Of a DNA stretch of 64,000 bases, positions 9,826-63,798 are shown piece by piece. A model generated the notes under the pieces. The model was not told the origin of the DNA, did not search any database, and saw nothing but the letters and a program-made list of their open reading frames with translations. The number at the start of each line of letters is the position of its first letter. The first letter of the stretch is position 1. The stretch is from sequence record NC_048173.1; one strand, written 5' to 3'. The translations under genes and the position numbers were made by a program.

Positions 9826-9869
9826 CCCAGACTCCCTAACGGGGTCTGGGTTTCTTTTTTTCTTTTTTT
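9826..9869 (+). terminator. Intrinsic terminator (CCCAGACTCC/GGGGTCTGGG + T tract)
   Basis: 10-bp stem, long T run. Confidence 0.85.
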
Positions 9870-42682: not shown

Positions 42683-42709
42683 TATACTAGAGTATTCAAT
42701 TGTAAAAAA
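42683..42709 (-). promoter_or_regulatory. Candidate middle promoter TTTTTTAC-N15-TATA
   Basis: 46 nt upstream of the 42636 start. Confidence 0.6.
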
Positions 42710-60351: not shown

Positions 60352-60888
60352 ATGAGTACCAAGTCGCCTGCTTTCTACCTGTTCCATTCGTGGTACGGAT
60401 GGCGTGTGCCGGAATATGCCACGCTGACCCAGTACGCTCGTGAAGAGCATGGATTGTTTCTGCCAGAAGACCGCAACAAAGCGAAAGCAATTCTGCTGAA
60501 CAAAAAGACGGTGTTCATGACCGTTGCGCAGGCGGCTGAATACTTAACTGACGGCGGGTCACTGGATATCAACGACCCGGACAACGACGCCTTGCCGGTT
60601 TACCAGATGATAATGGAACACCTGAACAACTGGCTGACGTATCTCACCAGTCCGAGTTTGATTGTGCGCAAAACGCCAATTGTCGGATTACGTGAAATGA
60701 ATGTGCTGGCGAATAACCTGTTTCCGGTAGCAAACCGTAAAGGCTACTTCAAGAAACCGGAGATTACCATGTCCATGCAGCTCGCTTCGTTCTTTAATGA
60801 CGTCAAACCGATGGTGCAACAGCATCGCTTCAATGACCAGTTGATGTTGATGATTGAAAGCGCGTATCGGCGTCGTGGAGGTCGCTAA
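60352..60888 (+). CDS. Conserved hypothetical protein
   Basis: 178 aa, GAGGT RBS. Confidence 0.7.
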   Translation: MSTKSPAFYLFHSWYGWRVPEYATLTQYAREEHGLFLPEDRNKAKAILLNKKTVFMTVAQAAEYLTDGGSLDINDPDNDALPVYQMIMEHLNNWLTYLTSPSLIVRKTPIVGLREMNVLANNLFPVANRKGYFKKPEITMSMQLASFFNDVKPMVQQHRFNDQLMLMIESAYRRRGGR

Positions 60889-62177
60889 TGTTCGCCAGAT
60901 TTAAATCCATCGTGGCCAAGCACATCGCCAAGGCCGTGGGTAGCCCTAAGTTCACCTACACGGTGGTACTGAAGGCGAACGGCGTCGCAGTAAAGGCAAT
61001 GAAGGTGCATTCAATTACACGCCGTTCTGAGTTTGTACGCACGATAGGCACAACCACGTTTATCACCATCCTCGTGCCAATGTCACAGTTGCGTCTGTTG
61101 CTGTCCAATACGTACGGTAACCTCACCTGCACACTGGGGACGTTCATCAGTGGGCGCCTCAGTAAACGGGAGGTGTTGTACGGGGTAGTGCAGAATGCCC
61201 AAGACCTCGACTTGTCCGCCCCGACGAAGAACCTCAGTCAGGGTGATGACATGGACTTCTCGGTGGTGACGTTGGAGCTGATGTCCGAGACCGTGTGGAA
61301 TTTACGCATGGTGCAACACGGGCTGAACATTCAACGGAACGACCCACTCACGGTTTGCCGGTTCTTGCTGGCACGCACTACAAGGGCACAGGATGCGCAG
61401 AAAGGGGATACCGAAGCGTTGCAGTATGCAGAAGAGCCGCAGACGCCGTATGCGTCGATTGTGGTTCCTGATGGAACCCCGTTCCGCGGTATCTTCGACT
61501 ACCTGCAAAACCGCTATGGCGTGTACTCTCAAGGGTTGGGGGTGTTTAATTACCAAGACATCTGGTTCCTCTTTAAACCGTGGAACAAAGCCCGCTTTCA
61601 GGAAGATGACTACCGCCTGGTTATATACGCATTAGCTGCGGACGACATGGCGCAACCCGAACATACGTTTCGTATTGACGGGAAGACCTACTATGTCGTC
61701 GTAGCAGGCGATACAAGGCTCGTAGACCAACGCGACCAGTCTGCCCTGAACGAAGGTACCGGTTATCGCGTCGCCTCTGTACGCGCGTTAGACGGCCGCA
61801 CCGTGGACTTGTCATCGGACGGTCCACAGTCGACCACTTCTGATGCATTTGTCAGCGCCTCGAACCCCACCCCGCACAACTCAAAGATGACCAATGCGAA
61901 CTTCGGTCAGCAGAAGTTCACCGACAGTGATAAAGCTCTGCGTAGTGAGTTTGCTCGTAAGGGTGGGCGTTATCTCACCGTAACGTGGTCAAACGCGATG
62001 TTTGGTGCCGTACGTCCGGGAATGGGGGTGCAGTACAACTACGCCAACGACGGTGGGATGTTCACCAAGCACGGGACTATCATCGGGGAGATACACCACA
62101 CCGCCCTTGATGGTGGGGGTACAGCTGGAGAACAATACGTTTCCAATGCAGAAATCTTGCTCTGGATTGCCGACTAG
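60888..62177 (+). CDS. Conserved virion structural protein (neck or hub-like)
   Basis: 429 aa beta-rich; GGAGG RBS, TAATG coupling. Confidence 0.6.
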   Translation: MFARFKSIVAKHIAKAVGSPKFTYTVVLKANGVAVKAMKVHSITRRSEFVRTIGTTTFITILVPMSQLRLLLSNTYGNLTCTLGTFISGRLSKREVLYGVVQNAQDLDLSAPTKNLSQGDDMDFSVVTLELMSETVWNLRMVQHGLNIQRNDPLTVCRFLLARTTRAQDAQKGDTEALQYAEEPQTPYASIVVPDGTPFRGIFDYLQNRYGVYSQGLGVFNYQDIWFLFKPWNKARFQEDDYRLVIYALAADDMAQPEHTFRIDGKTYYVVVAGDTRLVDQRDQSALNEGTGYRVASVRALDGRTVDLSSDGPQSTTSDAFVSASNPTPHNSKMTNANFGQQKFTDSDKALRSEFARKGGRYLTVTWSNAMFGAVRPGMGVQYNYANDGGMFTKHGTIIGEIHHTALDGGGTAGEQYVSNAEILLWIAD

Positions 62178-62178
62178 A

Positions 62179-62205
62179 TTTTTTACAACAGGCTACTTAG
62201 ATATA
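62179..62205 (+). promoter_or_regulatory. Candidate middle promoter TTTTTTAC-N15-TATA with no downstream ORF
   Basis: Full motif match. Confidence 0.6.
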
Positions 62206-62210
62206 AGTCA

Positions 62211-62352
62211 GCCAGGGGATACCTAGGTTTGGGAGGGGGGTTTTTAACGAGTGACGAGCGTAGCGAGACACGACCTCCTTATTCCTAAGTAATCCTGTAA
62301 GGGATTACGCTTAAGTAAGCTCTCCCTCCGGGGAGAGTCCTTATTTCTTTTT
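62211..62352 (+). ncRNA. Candidate structured small RNA (about 140 nt)
   Basis: Own promoter, three stems, terminal intrinsic terminator, no ATG-initiated ORF. Confidence 0.55.
62320..62352 (+). terminator. Intrinsic terminator (CTCTCCC-TCCG-GGGAGAG)
   Basis: 7-bp stem, T-rich tail. Confidence 0.8.
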
Positions 62353-62373
62353 ACGTTATTTTCTAATGGTATG
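62348..62373 (+). promoter_or_regulatory. Candidate promoter TTTTTAC-N15-TATG (also TGGTATG)
   Basis: 34 nt upstream of 62408; matches both middle and late patterns. Confidence 0.55.
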
Positions 62374-62407
62374 TTATCCAAAACCCATTTAATAAGGAAT
62401 TATCCGA

Positions 62408-63163
62408 ATGAGCGTTACTACAGATATCGTTCTCTATAAACTCTCTGCTGACCTCATCAAGAAGATTGATGAATTCGAAAAGGCAACGTTCGGTAAAAAC
62501 GCCAGCAAGCTCTGGGACCGTATGCTGAAAGTTCTGCCGCAGAATGCCGCGGAGTTAGAGATTCTCGGTGTGCAGGCAACCAACCGTGACAGCACTATTG
62601 TTATCCTGTATAAGGCTGATGGTGTGGAAGGCGGTAAGACCCTGCAAATCGCGGACACGGGTACCGTCGGCAATATGCTGTTCCTGCACGCAGTGGCGTT
62701 TGCCCCGGCGTATCAGGCGCTGGGTTCGATCTACGACATCGATTACATCTATCAGCTGGCCAACACCATCTCTGGACGTATCGTGCCGAACGAGTTTGAC
62801 AGCTATCCGCAGTACGTGAAACGTATTCGCCCAGAAGACTTTGACGACGTTGTGTCGCTGGACGTGTTCCGCTTCGAGCTGATTGGTGAAAACCGCACCG
62901 ATGACTTCGTGACCTACCTGAAGGCCATTGTGCGCTACCACGCTGAGATGTCAACCGAAGACATGTCGAACAACCACAACGAACTGTACCCGGTTCTGAT
63001 GTACGGTAACCGTGTCGCCTTTGCGACCTACATCCCGTTCCCGGCCCGTATCGTGGCACCGTACCACGACAACACCATTCTGCCGGAACCGCTGGAACTG
63101 GGGCTGGTCTTCACCGATGCAGTGAACGCTATCAGCGAACAACGCTACCATCTGCAGCACTAA
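62408..63163 (+). CDS. Conserved hypothetical protein
   Basis: 251 aa, AAGGA RBS, codon-biased. Confidence 0.8.
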   Translation: MSVTTDIVLYKLSADLIKKIDEFEKATFGKNASKLWDRMLKVLPQNAAELEILGVQATNRDSTIVILYKADGVEGGKTLQIADTGTVGNMLFLHAVAFAPAYQALGSIYDIDYIYQLANTISGRIVPNEFDSYPQYVKRIRPEDFDDVVSLDVFRFELIGENRTDDFVTYLKAIVRYHAEMSTEDMSNNHNELYPVLMYGNRVAFATYIPFPARIVAPYHDNTILPEPLELGLVFTDAVNAISEQRYHLQH

Positions 63164-63170
63164 TAAACAA

Positions 63171-63219
63171 AAGCCGACTACTACCCCTTTTGGGGTAGTA
63201 GCGGTTATTTCCTTTTTTT
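63171..63219 (+). terminator. Terminator (CTACTACCCC-TTTT-GGGGTAGTAG)
   Basis: 10-bp stem plus outer stem, T run. Confidence 0.85.
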
Positions 63220-63239
63220 CCTAACGAAAAATATTTCAG

Positions 63240-63250
63240 ATATATATTAC
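63240..63250 (+). promoter_or_regulatory. Candidate early promoter containing exact TATATTAC
   Basis: phiKZ early consensus at 63243-63250. Confidence 0.6.
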
Positions 63251-63305
63251 TTTCATGAACGAGATGCATTATCTCACCTAATCTAAATACTTGTGGAGCT
63301 TTCAA

Positions 63306-63584
63306 ATGACTATTACCCGTACTCTGATTCATGTTGTTGCTGTTCTGGCTGTCGCTGTATTCTTCATTCTGTCTCCATTCGCTGTAATGGATTTACTGGG
63401 TGGCAATGATAACGCCATCGTTGCAGGCTTAGGCGGTGCACTGTACATCGTTACTGCACTGGGCTTTGTATTCTCAGATTCACTGGAACTGAACTTTGGT
63501 CCGTTCCGCATGTACCGCAACTTTGTAGATAACAATCGCTACGTAGCTCCAGTCTGGCGTTACGTGTTCTCTAACGAAGACTAA
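63306..63584 (+). CDS. Small two-TM membrane protein
   Basis: ATG 63306 with GGAG RBS; two hydrophobic helices. Confidence 0.7.
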   Translation: MTITRTLIHVVAVLAVAVFFILSPFAVMDLLGGNDNAIVAGLGGALYIVTALGFVFSDSLELNFGPFRMYRNFVDNNRYVAPVWRYVFSNED

Positions 63585-63624
63585 TACCCTTACTTAACTA
63601 AAACCAACTAAAAGGATTACCGCC

Positions 63625-63798
63625 ATGAAAAATGATAACCTCGATATGCTGCTGAAACTGTCTGGTAAAGAACTCGCTGCTGTGATGGCACAGGTAAAAG
63701 CTGAGAAAGCAGCAGGCCAACGTCTTCCGGCGGTAAGTCCAGTGAAAGCATACCTCTCAACTGACTTCCGTCCTAACCGCATTCTGAATAAGGCATAA
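63625..63798 (+). CDS. 57-aa protein below ORF-track cutoff (MKNDNLDMLLKLSGKELAAV...)
   Basis: AAGGA RBS; translated by hand. Confidence 0.6.
   Translation: MKNDNLDMLLKLSGKELAAVMAQVKAEKAAGQRLPAVSPVKAYLSTDFRPNRILNKA

Follow-up and report, generated by a model that had tools for sequence, protein, structure and literature searches.

What occupies the 230-nucleotide (nt) gap between genes gp63 and gp64 of Erwinia phage Derbicus? The gap lies within a 64,000-nt stretch of sequence record NC_048173.1, hereafter the window, which corresponds to bases 1-64000 of the Derbicus genome; its bases 60800-63700 are 100% identical, with matching coordinates, to the Derbicus record MK514282. Over the same bases EarlPhillipIV is nearly identical, pEa_SNUABM_38 is 96% identical, and Cronobacter phage CR5 and Erwinia phage Phobos are 78% and 72% identical, respectively. 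All of these phages, like Derbicus, are members of the genus Derbicusvirus, which belongs to the family Chimalliviridae, the nucleus-forming jumbo phages. No annotation is present in the gap in any of the five deposited Derbicusvirus genome records examined. A preliminary description of the locus had proposed an independently transcribed, structured non-coding RNA, and we refer to this element as E1. Together with a shorter paralogue, E2, located elsewhere in the same genome, E1 very probably represents, as judged from sequence comparison, a new family of phage small RNAs of a kind already known from jumbo phages. The proposed layout is supported by covariation, by the class of promoter, by the lack of an open reading frame (ORF), by behaviour as a cassette and by the existence of E2.

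E1 is better conserved than the genes on either side of it. Between positions 62214 and 62345 it shares 84.8% identity with CR5 and 83.2% with Phobos, as opposed to 68-77% overall and 40-57% at third codon positions for the flanking gp63 and gp64. Thus, the non-coding stretch is more constrained than the adjacent proteins. RNAalifold, run on four sequences, three of which are distinct (Derbicus, CR5 and Phobos), yielded a multi-hairpin fold with 98.3% of cells paired and five pairs changed on both sides. This version contains a long-range closing stem, GGGGAU/AGUCCU, which is invariant and hence not supported by covariation, and which competes with a covarying local 5′ hairpin, P1, recovered by single-sequence folding in all three species. 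In the working fold, P1 was put in place of the closing stem. The working fold has 39 pairs; 94.9% of its cells are paired, compared to 38-54% when the partners are slid by one to three columns, and seven pairs are changed on both sides with pairing kept. In 500 column shuffles, the observed values were reached no more than twice. The covariation in relatives that the preliminary description had named as a check is therefore found, although with three distinct sequences it is suggestive and statistically not final. Overall, we are quite confident that a functional RNA structure exists on the plus strand.

The elements of the fold follow one another on the plus strand. P1 (62211-62227; CCAGG-GGAUA-CCUAGG) has an invariant GGAUA loop and two C-G to U-A changes, with 78% of cells paired. 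Next comes a G tract, GGGAGGGGGG (62231-62240), which contributes positions 62233-62239 to helix P2 as its 5′ strand (100% of cells paired), and then an unpaired linker, UUUUUAACGA (62241-62250), which is invariant in the three species. The covarying hairpin P2a (62251-62271; GUGAC-GAGCGUAGCGA-GACAC) has at its core an 11-mer, GAGCGUAGCGA (62256-62266), where a GUA triloop sits on two G-C pairs bordered by tandem G.A/A.G; pairs 49-65 and 51-63 of P2a are changed on both sides, and A.A at 50-64 is turned into A-U. The CU tract, CCUCCUUAUUCCUA (62274-62287), provides the 3′ strand of P2 with its positions 62274-62280. P2 shows a G-C to G-U change in addition to three invariant G-U pairs, and since the latter would be C.A on the opposite strand, the fold is specific to the plus strand. 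Fold stability is z = −2.1 for the plus strand versus z = −0.6 for the minus strand. Hairpin P3 (62289-62308; GUAAUCCU-GUAA-GGGAUUAC) consists of eight pairs, two of them double-changed, with 100% of cells paired, whereas in the short hairpin P4 (62309-62320; GCUU-AAGU-AAGC) pair 109-117 is U-A, C-G or A-U across the three species. Of the stems in the preliminary description, GGGAGG/CCTCCT (where a C-to-U change gives a G-U pair), GTAATCC/GGATTAC (with two double changes) and the invariant CTCTCCC/GGGAGAG survive the comparison; the TAGG/CCTA stem (62224-62287) is broken in CR5 and Phobos, and the local hairpin P1 fits better. A further candidate was complementarity of UCCUUAUU, present at 62278-62285 and 62338-62345, to the gp64 ribosome-binding site AAUAAGGA; it is lost in CR5 and Phobos and is expected from composition.

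E1 is preceded on the plus strand by the promoter motif TTTTTTAC-N15-TATA (62179-62205), composed of TTTTTT-AC (62179-62186), a 15-nt spacer (62187-62201) and TATA (62202-62205). It belongs to a recurring class. The window contains nine copies of TTTTAC-N15-TATR, eight of them on the plus strand, whereas 0.21 would be expected from shuffles, none of which reached nine. Copies of TTTTTTAC-N15-TATR are located at 1479, 3417, 6583, 8368, 14948, 19979, 62181 and 62349 on the plus strand and at 42707 on the minus strand, with degenerate copies at 9866, 11039, 22293 and 55799. Three copies (6583, 14948 and 19979) fall within ORFs. For intergenic copies a start codon is found 23-47 nt 3′ of TATR, the sole exception being the copy at 62181, which is followed by a gene-free stretch of about 200 nt. 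Some 20 more copies with the same spacing are scattered across the remaining genome, ahead of genes for helicase, UvsX, SMC, nuclease and others. In CR5 and Phobos, TTTTTTAC and TATA of the E1 promoter are invariant and the spacing is exact, while the sequence of the spacer has diverged. A scan for sigma-70 promoters found none near the locus. Middle promoters of phiKZ carry AAanTTACc centred near −24, and some have TATG, the G of which is +1 (PMC4666361). Both groups place TTAC about 20 nt 5′ of a TATR initiator at fixed spacing (PMC4666361), but the phiKZ promoters have an A-rich upstream run and the Derbicus motif has a T-run instead. The resemblance of the Derbicus motif to them is one of layout. 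Based on this layout and on TATG(+1), the start of E1 is predicted at about A62205.

At the other end, a terminator scan detected the hairpin GCTCTCCC-TCCG-GGGAGAGT (62319-62338) followed by TCCTTATTTCTTTTT; the stem has eight pairs and is rich in G+C, the loop is a tetraloop, and the tail is U-rich. In the RNA this is P5 (62319-62352, plus strand), with stem CUCUCCC/GGGAGAG, loop UCCG and tail UCCUUAUUUCUUUUU. The stem is invariant, the loop is UUCG in CR5 and Phobos, and the T-run doubles as that of the next promoter. In its tail, UCCUUAUUU, P5 is similar to the terminator that precedes phiKZ gp182 (L093:11050-11091), and transcription of E1 probably ends at this phiKZ-type terminator. Downstream, a second promoter motif, TTTTTAC-N15-TATG (62346-62373, plus strand; as a TTTTAC-N15-TATR copy, 62349-62373), ends 35 nt before the start of gp64 and serves this gene. 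In the 62206-62345 interval there is no ATG, and ORFs of the plus strand are limited to a 13-codon GTG ORF (62251-62292) and a 19-codon TTG ORF, neither of them conserved as an ORF. Thus, the promoter, the roughly 140 nt without an ATG-initiated ORF, the intrinsic terminator and the separate promoter of the next gene, all of which the preliminary description had read from the Derbicus sequence, were recovered.

Translation of the 13-codon ORF had been named in the same description as something that might explain the locus. Its frame is open in all three species, but the start codon shifts: Derbicus has GTG, whereas Phobos has GTA with an ATG after it. The differences are without exception non-synonymous and coincide exactly with the compensatory pairs of P2a. 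E2 has a P2a-type hairpin but no start codon in the corresponding register. For these reasons the micro-ORF was rejected as an explanation. The 19-codon ORF is missing in CR5, and ORFs of 45 and 24 codons on the minus strand are not conserved. Read-through of the gp63 stop codon (TAG, TGA or TAA) was also rejected: the frame beyond it is open for 36-37 codons and shared in Derbicus and Phobos, but CR5 has another frame, with stops.

A covariance model of E1 run against the rest of the Derbicus genome matched positions 154,399-154,508 (17.6 bits, E ~0.005). The paralogue found in this way, E2, is shorter and lies outside the window, 92 kilobases (kb) from E1, on the plus strand, from 154,392 to about 154,480-154,510 (within Derbicus 154,370-154,510, L009:40370-40510), in the gap between the baseplate gene gp169 (minus strand) and gp170 (plus strand). 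Its 5′ part includes an TTTTTTAC-N15-TATAG motif, GGGAUAC and a small GNRA hairpin covarying from CGU/ACG to UGC/GCA; the core contains, in this order, GGGGAGAGGGGG-CUUUUAAUACAC, the 11-mer GAGCGUAGCGA and AUCCUUGUUCUU. The core common to E1 and E2 is about 50 nt long and comprises the G tract, the U-rich linker, the GAGCGUAGCGA mini-hairpin and the CU tract. The exact 11-mer has only these two sites in the 224-kb Derbicus genome, and a whole-genome scan for further tandem-GA mini-hairpins found none besides E1 and E2. It is invariant in six diverged copies, with the closing pair of the mini-hairpin being C-G in Derbicus E1, U-A in E1 of CR5 and Phobos, and G-C in all copies of E2. The unpaired linker is likewise invariant within each paralogue, whereas the outer hairpins differ between E1 and E2. 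E2 is kept in SNUABM_38, CR5 and Phobos with an invariant core of 48 nt and a variable 3′ part, which is shortened in Phobos. A pattern scan recovered exactly two copies per genome in three Derbicusvirus genomes of IMG/VR. A closing stem of E2, GACGG/CCGUC, similar to the closing stem of E1, was not conserved and was discarded.

Beyond the genus, the homologues of gp63 and gp64 in SPN3US and Wellington are adjacent, about 40 nt apart, and have no RNA element between them; a single TTTAC/TAAC-N15-TATG motif, which corresponds to the second Derbicus motif, overlaps the gp63 homologue at its 3′ end. Since these relatives have one promoter and no insert, the first motif, the RNA and the terminator appear to be an added, self-contained cassette. 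Searches of the window with Rfam 15 gave no match at gathering thresholds, and at E up to 10 the sole match in 62000-62500 was noise on the minus strand. ARAGORN detected no transfer RNA or transfer-messenger RNA. A blastn search of 5,426 E. coli genomes gave no match, and among 50,697 phage records only the five Derbicusvirus phages (nine records) were matched, apart from short promoter or chance matches.

The 11-mer by itself is far more widespread. Pattern scans for the 11-mer plus a G-run and CU or U-run context returned 21 loci in IMG/VR, 42 in JGI metagenomes and 18 in GTDB genomes. Many of them, on unrelated phage contigs (L018, L019, L023 and L029), are long intergenic hairpins with GAGCGUAGCGA as the cap, and loop variants GAA and GCA of the mini-hairpin also occur. 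The E1 model scored these loci at 12-20 bits, with no convincing E1 or E2 homologue; the best matches outside Derbicus, at 19-20 bits, come from loci pre-selected for the 11-mer. Given these scores, the mini-hairpin should be regarded as a shared module, probably a very stable one, and not as evidence of homology. It corresponds exactly, as C/G-GA-GC-GNA-GC-GA-G/C, to the GNA triloops of the GCGNAGC type combined with tandem sheared G.A in CGAG context. Those are generic stability motifs, however, whereas the Derbicus 11-mer is invariant in its six copies and has a conserved context. Rfam gave no match at the element in the other 11-mer loci, and a string search of the literature with the 11-mer and peptide read-outs of the repeats returned primers or nothing, so that no published name was found.

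Several of these loci have features of their own. GAGCG(N)AGCGA is also found at L021/L022, L027 and L038 (phage and metagenome contigs) and at L040-L092 (bacterial metagenome-assembled genomes). In bacteria the loci are multi-copy or tandem repeats in several phyla, often located just 3′ of a terminator; an example of the repeat is GTCATTGC-GAGCGTAGCGA-AGCAATC, and arrays are present in a Saprospiraceae metagenome-assembled genome. A large symmetric intergenic palindrome occupies L029:6790-7010 (IMG/VR contig 3300010883_000196). Each of its arms carries GGC-GAGCG(T/A)AGCGAG-CC beside a ACCCCCTCCTTT tract, and its centre is an inverted repeat, TAATATGTGAT...ATGACATATTA. This contig has at least four such mini-hairpins within 10 kb, and the palindrome resembles an origin or a control region for divergent transcription.

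How might E1 and E2 be made, and what might they do? One of the phage's own multisubunit RNA polymerases would start E1 at the phiKZ-middle-type promoter (with TATR at the start and xTTAC some 20 nt before it) and produce a plus-strand RNA of about 140 nt, from ~62205 to ~62350, with five hairpins, stopping at the last hairpin and the U-run. E2 would be made in the same way as a shorter RNA. The shared core, with the G tract paired to the CU tract via many G-U pairs, the U-rich unpaired linker and the GAGCGUAGCGA mini-hairpin, may then act in trans as a protein-binding platform, serving as a sponge, scaffold or cofactor for a phage or host protein in mid infection. A platform of this type seems likeliest because invariance within the core extends equally to paired and unpaired bases, whereas the outer hairpins may covary or disappear. 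Moreover, as the outer hairpins differ between the paralogues, a common protein partner fits better than a common base-pairing target. Since gp64 keeps its own promoter past the E1 terminator, E1 does not appear to be needed in cis, and its insulation from gp64 argues for a gene of its own and not a gp64 leader. We infer the discrete transcript, its timing, the action in trans and the protein partner from sequence features. The complete proposition, two independently transcribed small RNAs that act in trans by binding protein, has in our estimate a somewhat better than even chance of being correct.

Small RNAs have been mapped in the same family. ONT-cappable-seq identified 11 of them in 201phi2-1, among them sRNA005, whose counterpart in phiKZ precedes the tail gene gp182 (PMC11512511). 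They are bounded by a phage start site and a terminator, and one is conserved across genera (PMC11512511). E1 and E2 share with these RNAs the family of phages, the organization as short start-site/terminator units, conservation among related jumbo phages and the lack of a known function. They differ in being intergenic, having their own promoter and forming two paralogues, whereas the mapped RNAs are 5′ untranslated region (UTR) fragments. The phiKZ gp182 locus lies in a tail region and has no sequence relation to E1 or E2; its 55-nt upstream gap is matched by the E1 model through the terminator only (E = 0.055).

Several observations weigh against the small-RNA interpretation. The covariation rests on few events, given that only three diverged genomes are available, and a literature search found no Derbicusvirus transcriptome. 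In E2 a simple scan found no hairpin terminator, and shuffled sequences fold as stably as E2 does (z = 0.1 to −0.2); the 3′ end of E2 is consequently uncertain, and helix P2 followed by a U-rich run may serve in this capacity. Late transcripts can enter E1, as gp63 lacks a terminator, so E1 may be also, or only, a 3′ UTR. Finally, the proteins encoded nearby have no known function and are mutually unrelated: Pfam and PHROGs assign none to gp64 or gp170, and the two are not related to each other.

An alternative that deserves attention, though we consider it unlikely, is that E1 and E2 are cis-acting leaders, either put- or nut-like processive antitermination elements or attenuators, whose nascent folds would act on the very polymerase that transcribes them and thereby govern read-through of the terminators further on, into gp64-gp70 and from gp170 onward. 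Both copies start at a promoter of the same class and directly precede a block of small genes, and without a clear terminator in E2 transcripts could run into gp170. In addition, as read from the sequence, GGAGGG (62232-62237) has two possible partners, the CU tract and CCCUCC (62324-62329), the latter lying in the 5′ half and loop of the terminator; such alternative pairings of G-rich and CU-rich tracts arise readily from composition, however, and no covariation bears on GGAGGG/CCCUCC. The linker loosely resembles boxA. The putL and putR elements of HK022 and the lambdoid nut sites are similarly two related structured elements per genome, located 3′ of promoters of one class and with terminators further on. 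They act on the host RNA polymerase, whereas the Derbicus family uses its own split-subunit polymerases, and they display no structural or sequence similarity to E1 or E2. The downstream genes of Derbicus have promoters of their own: that of gp64 is positioned 3′ of the E1 terminator and its counterpart in SPN3US and Wellington drives gp64 with no leader, and gp170 has an early-type promoter. An attenuating riboswitch or leader would make gp64 dependent on read-through from the leader promoter, and the promoter motif in front of gp64 argues otherwise. No leader or riboswitch of Rfam was matched either.

A further view, to which we give a rather small chance, is that E1 and E2 are a new class of RNA in nucleus-forming jumbo phages, with a core imitating a hairpin and, after it, the 3′ end of 16S ribosomal RNA, so as to be decoys or cofactors for a factor recognizing this part of the ribosome, or else put-like elements that reprogram the non-canonical RNA polymerase of the phage. 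The sequence ACCUCCUUA, present in Derbicus E1 and Phobos E2, is identical to the 3′ terminus of E. coli 16S ribosomal RNA. The 3′-end-like tract would then be held, by pairing with the G tract, in a helix resembling that between Shine-Dalgarno and anti-Shine-Dalgarno sequences. The 16S-like match is offered as a lead, and comparison of the CU tract variants ACCUCCUUA, ACUUCCUUA and CAUCCUUG indicates that it is only partly conserved.

Could E1 instead be the 3′ UTR and insulator of the structural block, its stack of stable hairpins ending and protecting the late structural mRNA and shielding gp64, with the promoter motif being incidental? The missing terminator between gp63 and E1 means that gp63 transcripts must end at 62319-62352, terminator-promoter pairs with a common T-run are frequent in the Derbicus genome, and P3 has 13 nt in common with a terminator hairpin at about 222,890 of Derbicus. 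We nevertheless find this improbable. E2 has the same core, yet a 3′ UTR is impossible there, since the gene upstream of E2 is encoded on the other strand. A simple stability element needs neither an invariant unpaired linker nor an invariant mini-hairpin, and the promoter motif is kept with exact spacing in all three species. Among bacterial 3′-UTR-type small RNAs with their own promoter, MicL and DapZ likewise have a promoter at the end of a coding region and yield a short structured RNA whose hairpin and U-tail are common with the upstream mRNA. Unlike these, E1 and E2 share no conserved single-stranded seed, their conserved part is a folded core, and their promoter is of a phage type and not sigma-70.

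We are more doubtful still about the transcript priming or marking replication by forming a persistent R-loop, in the manner of T4 oriF/oriG, ColE1 RNA II or mitochondrial CSBII. A middle-type promoter is closely followed by a G6-U5 run, GGGAGGGGGGUUUUU (in E2, GGGGAGAGGGGGCUUUU), each genome has two copies, and E2 is positioned at a switch in gene orientation. GCGNAGC-type mini-hairpins are very stable in DNA too. On the other hand, cumulative GC skew tracks gene orientation and has no origin-like extreme at 62 kb, a folded RNA is indicated by the compensation seen in P3 and P4 and by the G-U pairs of P2, and no AT-rich unwinding element is seen beyond ordinary promoter sequence. Least credible of all is a peptide product, be it the 12-13-residue micro-ORF (open in three species, with the Shine-Dalgarno-like GGGAGG 10-13 nt upstream) or an extension of gp63 by read-through (open in Derbicus and Phobos), in view of the shifting start, the non-synonymous but pair-preserving differences and the lack of a start in E2 in the former case, and of the interrupted CR5 frame and the varying stop codons in the latter, the minus-strand ORFs not being conserved either.

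The genes around E1 can be briefly described. The structural block upstream of E1 ends with gp63 (60888-62177, plus strand), which encodes a virion structural protein (phrog_3245); on the downstream side, gp64 (62408-63163, plus strand) encodes a hypothetical protein (phrog_8163). At 63177-63202, 3′ of gp64, there is a strong two-way terminator hairpin, CTACTACCCC-TTTT-GGGGTAGTAG, with T-runs on both strands. Derbicus gp65 (63291-63584; 97 amino acids) is annotated from TTG 63291; its homologue in SNUABM_38 and CR5 is annotated about five codons shorter, and the ATG at 63307, right 3′ of GTGGAGC, looks a better start. Another promoter-like motif, TTCAGATATATATTAC, lies 3′ of E2 ahead of gp170 (Derbicus 154,520), at 63235-63250 of the window (plus strand) before gp65, and at Derbicus 88,841; SPN3US (L094:2411-2427) has it at the corresponding place, as does Wellington with one change. 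As the site between E2 and gp170 is found again before gp65 and in these two phages, TTCAGATATATATTAC represents a second promoter class, probably the early, virion-polymerase class. A TTTTTTAC motif is also found in a third stretch, located outside the window at about 222,700-222,925 of Derbicus (L011:9700-9925), where it is followed by G-rich runs, GGAAGGGGGGAUCAAGGGGGGAUGG, and about 180 nt of AT-rich non-coding sequence. The stretch ends in a hairpin, GGUAUCCUGUAAGGGAUACC, with a T-run; this is the hairpin at about 222,890 that has 13 nt in common with P3. The annotated GTG start of gp239 (222,868) is probably wrong, because it lies upstream of the terminator and of an early-type promoter.

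Nucleus-forming jumbo phages encode their own polymerases and keep transcription apart from translation; almost nothing is known about their regulatory RNAs, the few small RNAs detected by long-read sequencing being without function. The promoter motif, being shared with SPN3US-like phages, aids the annotation of transcription units across such genomes. If E1 and E2 are indeed small RNAs, the locus offers a testable two-member RNA family, which is under strong selection and has a defined promoter class and fold and an invariant core of 50 nt.

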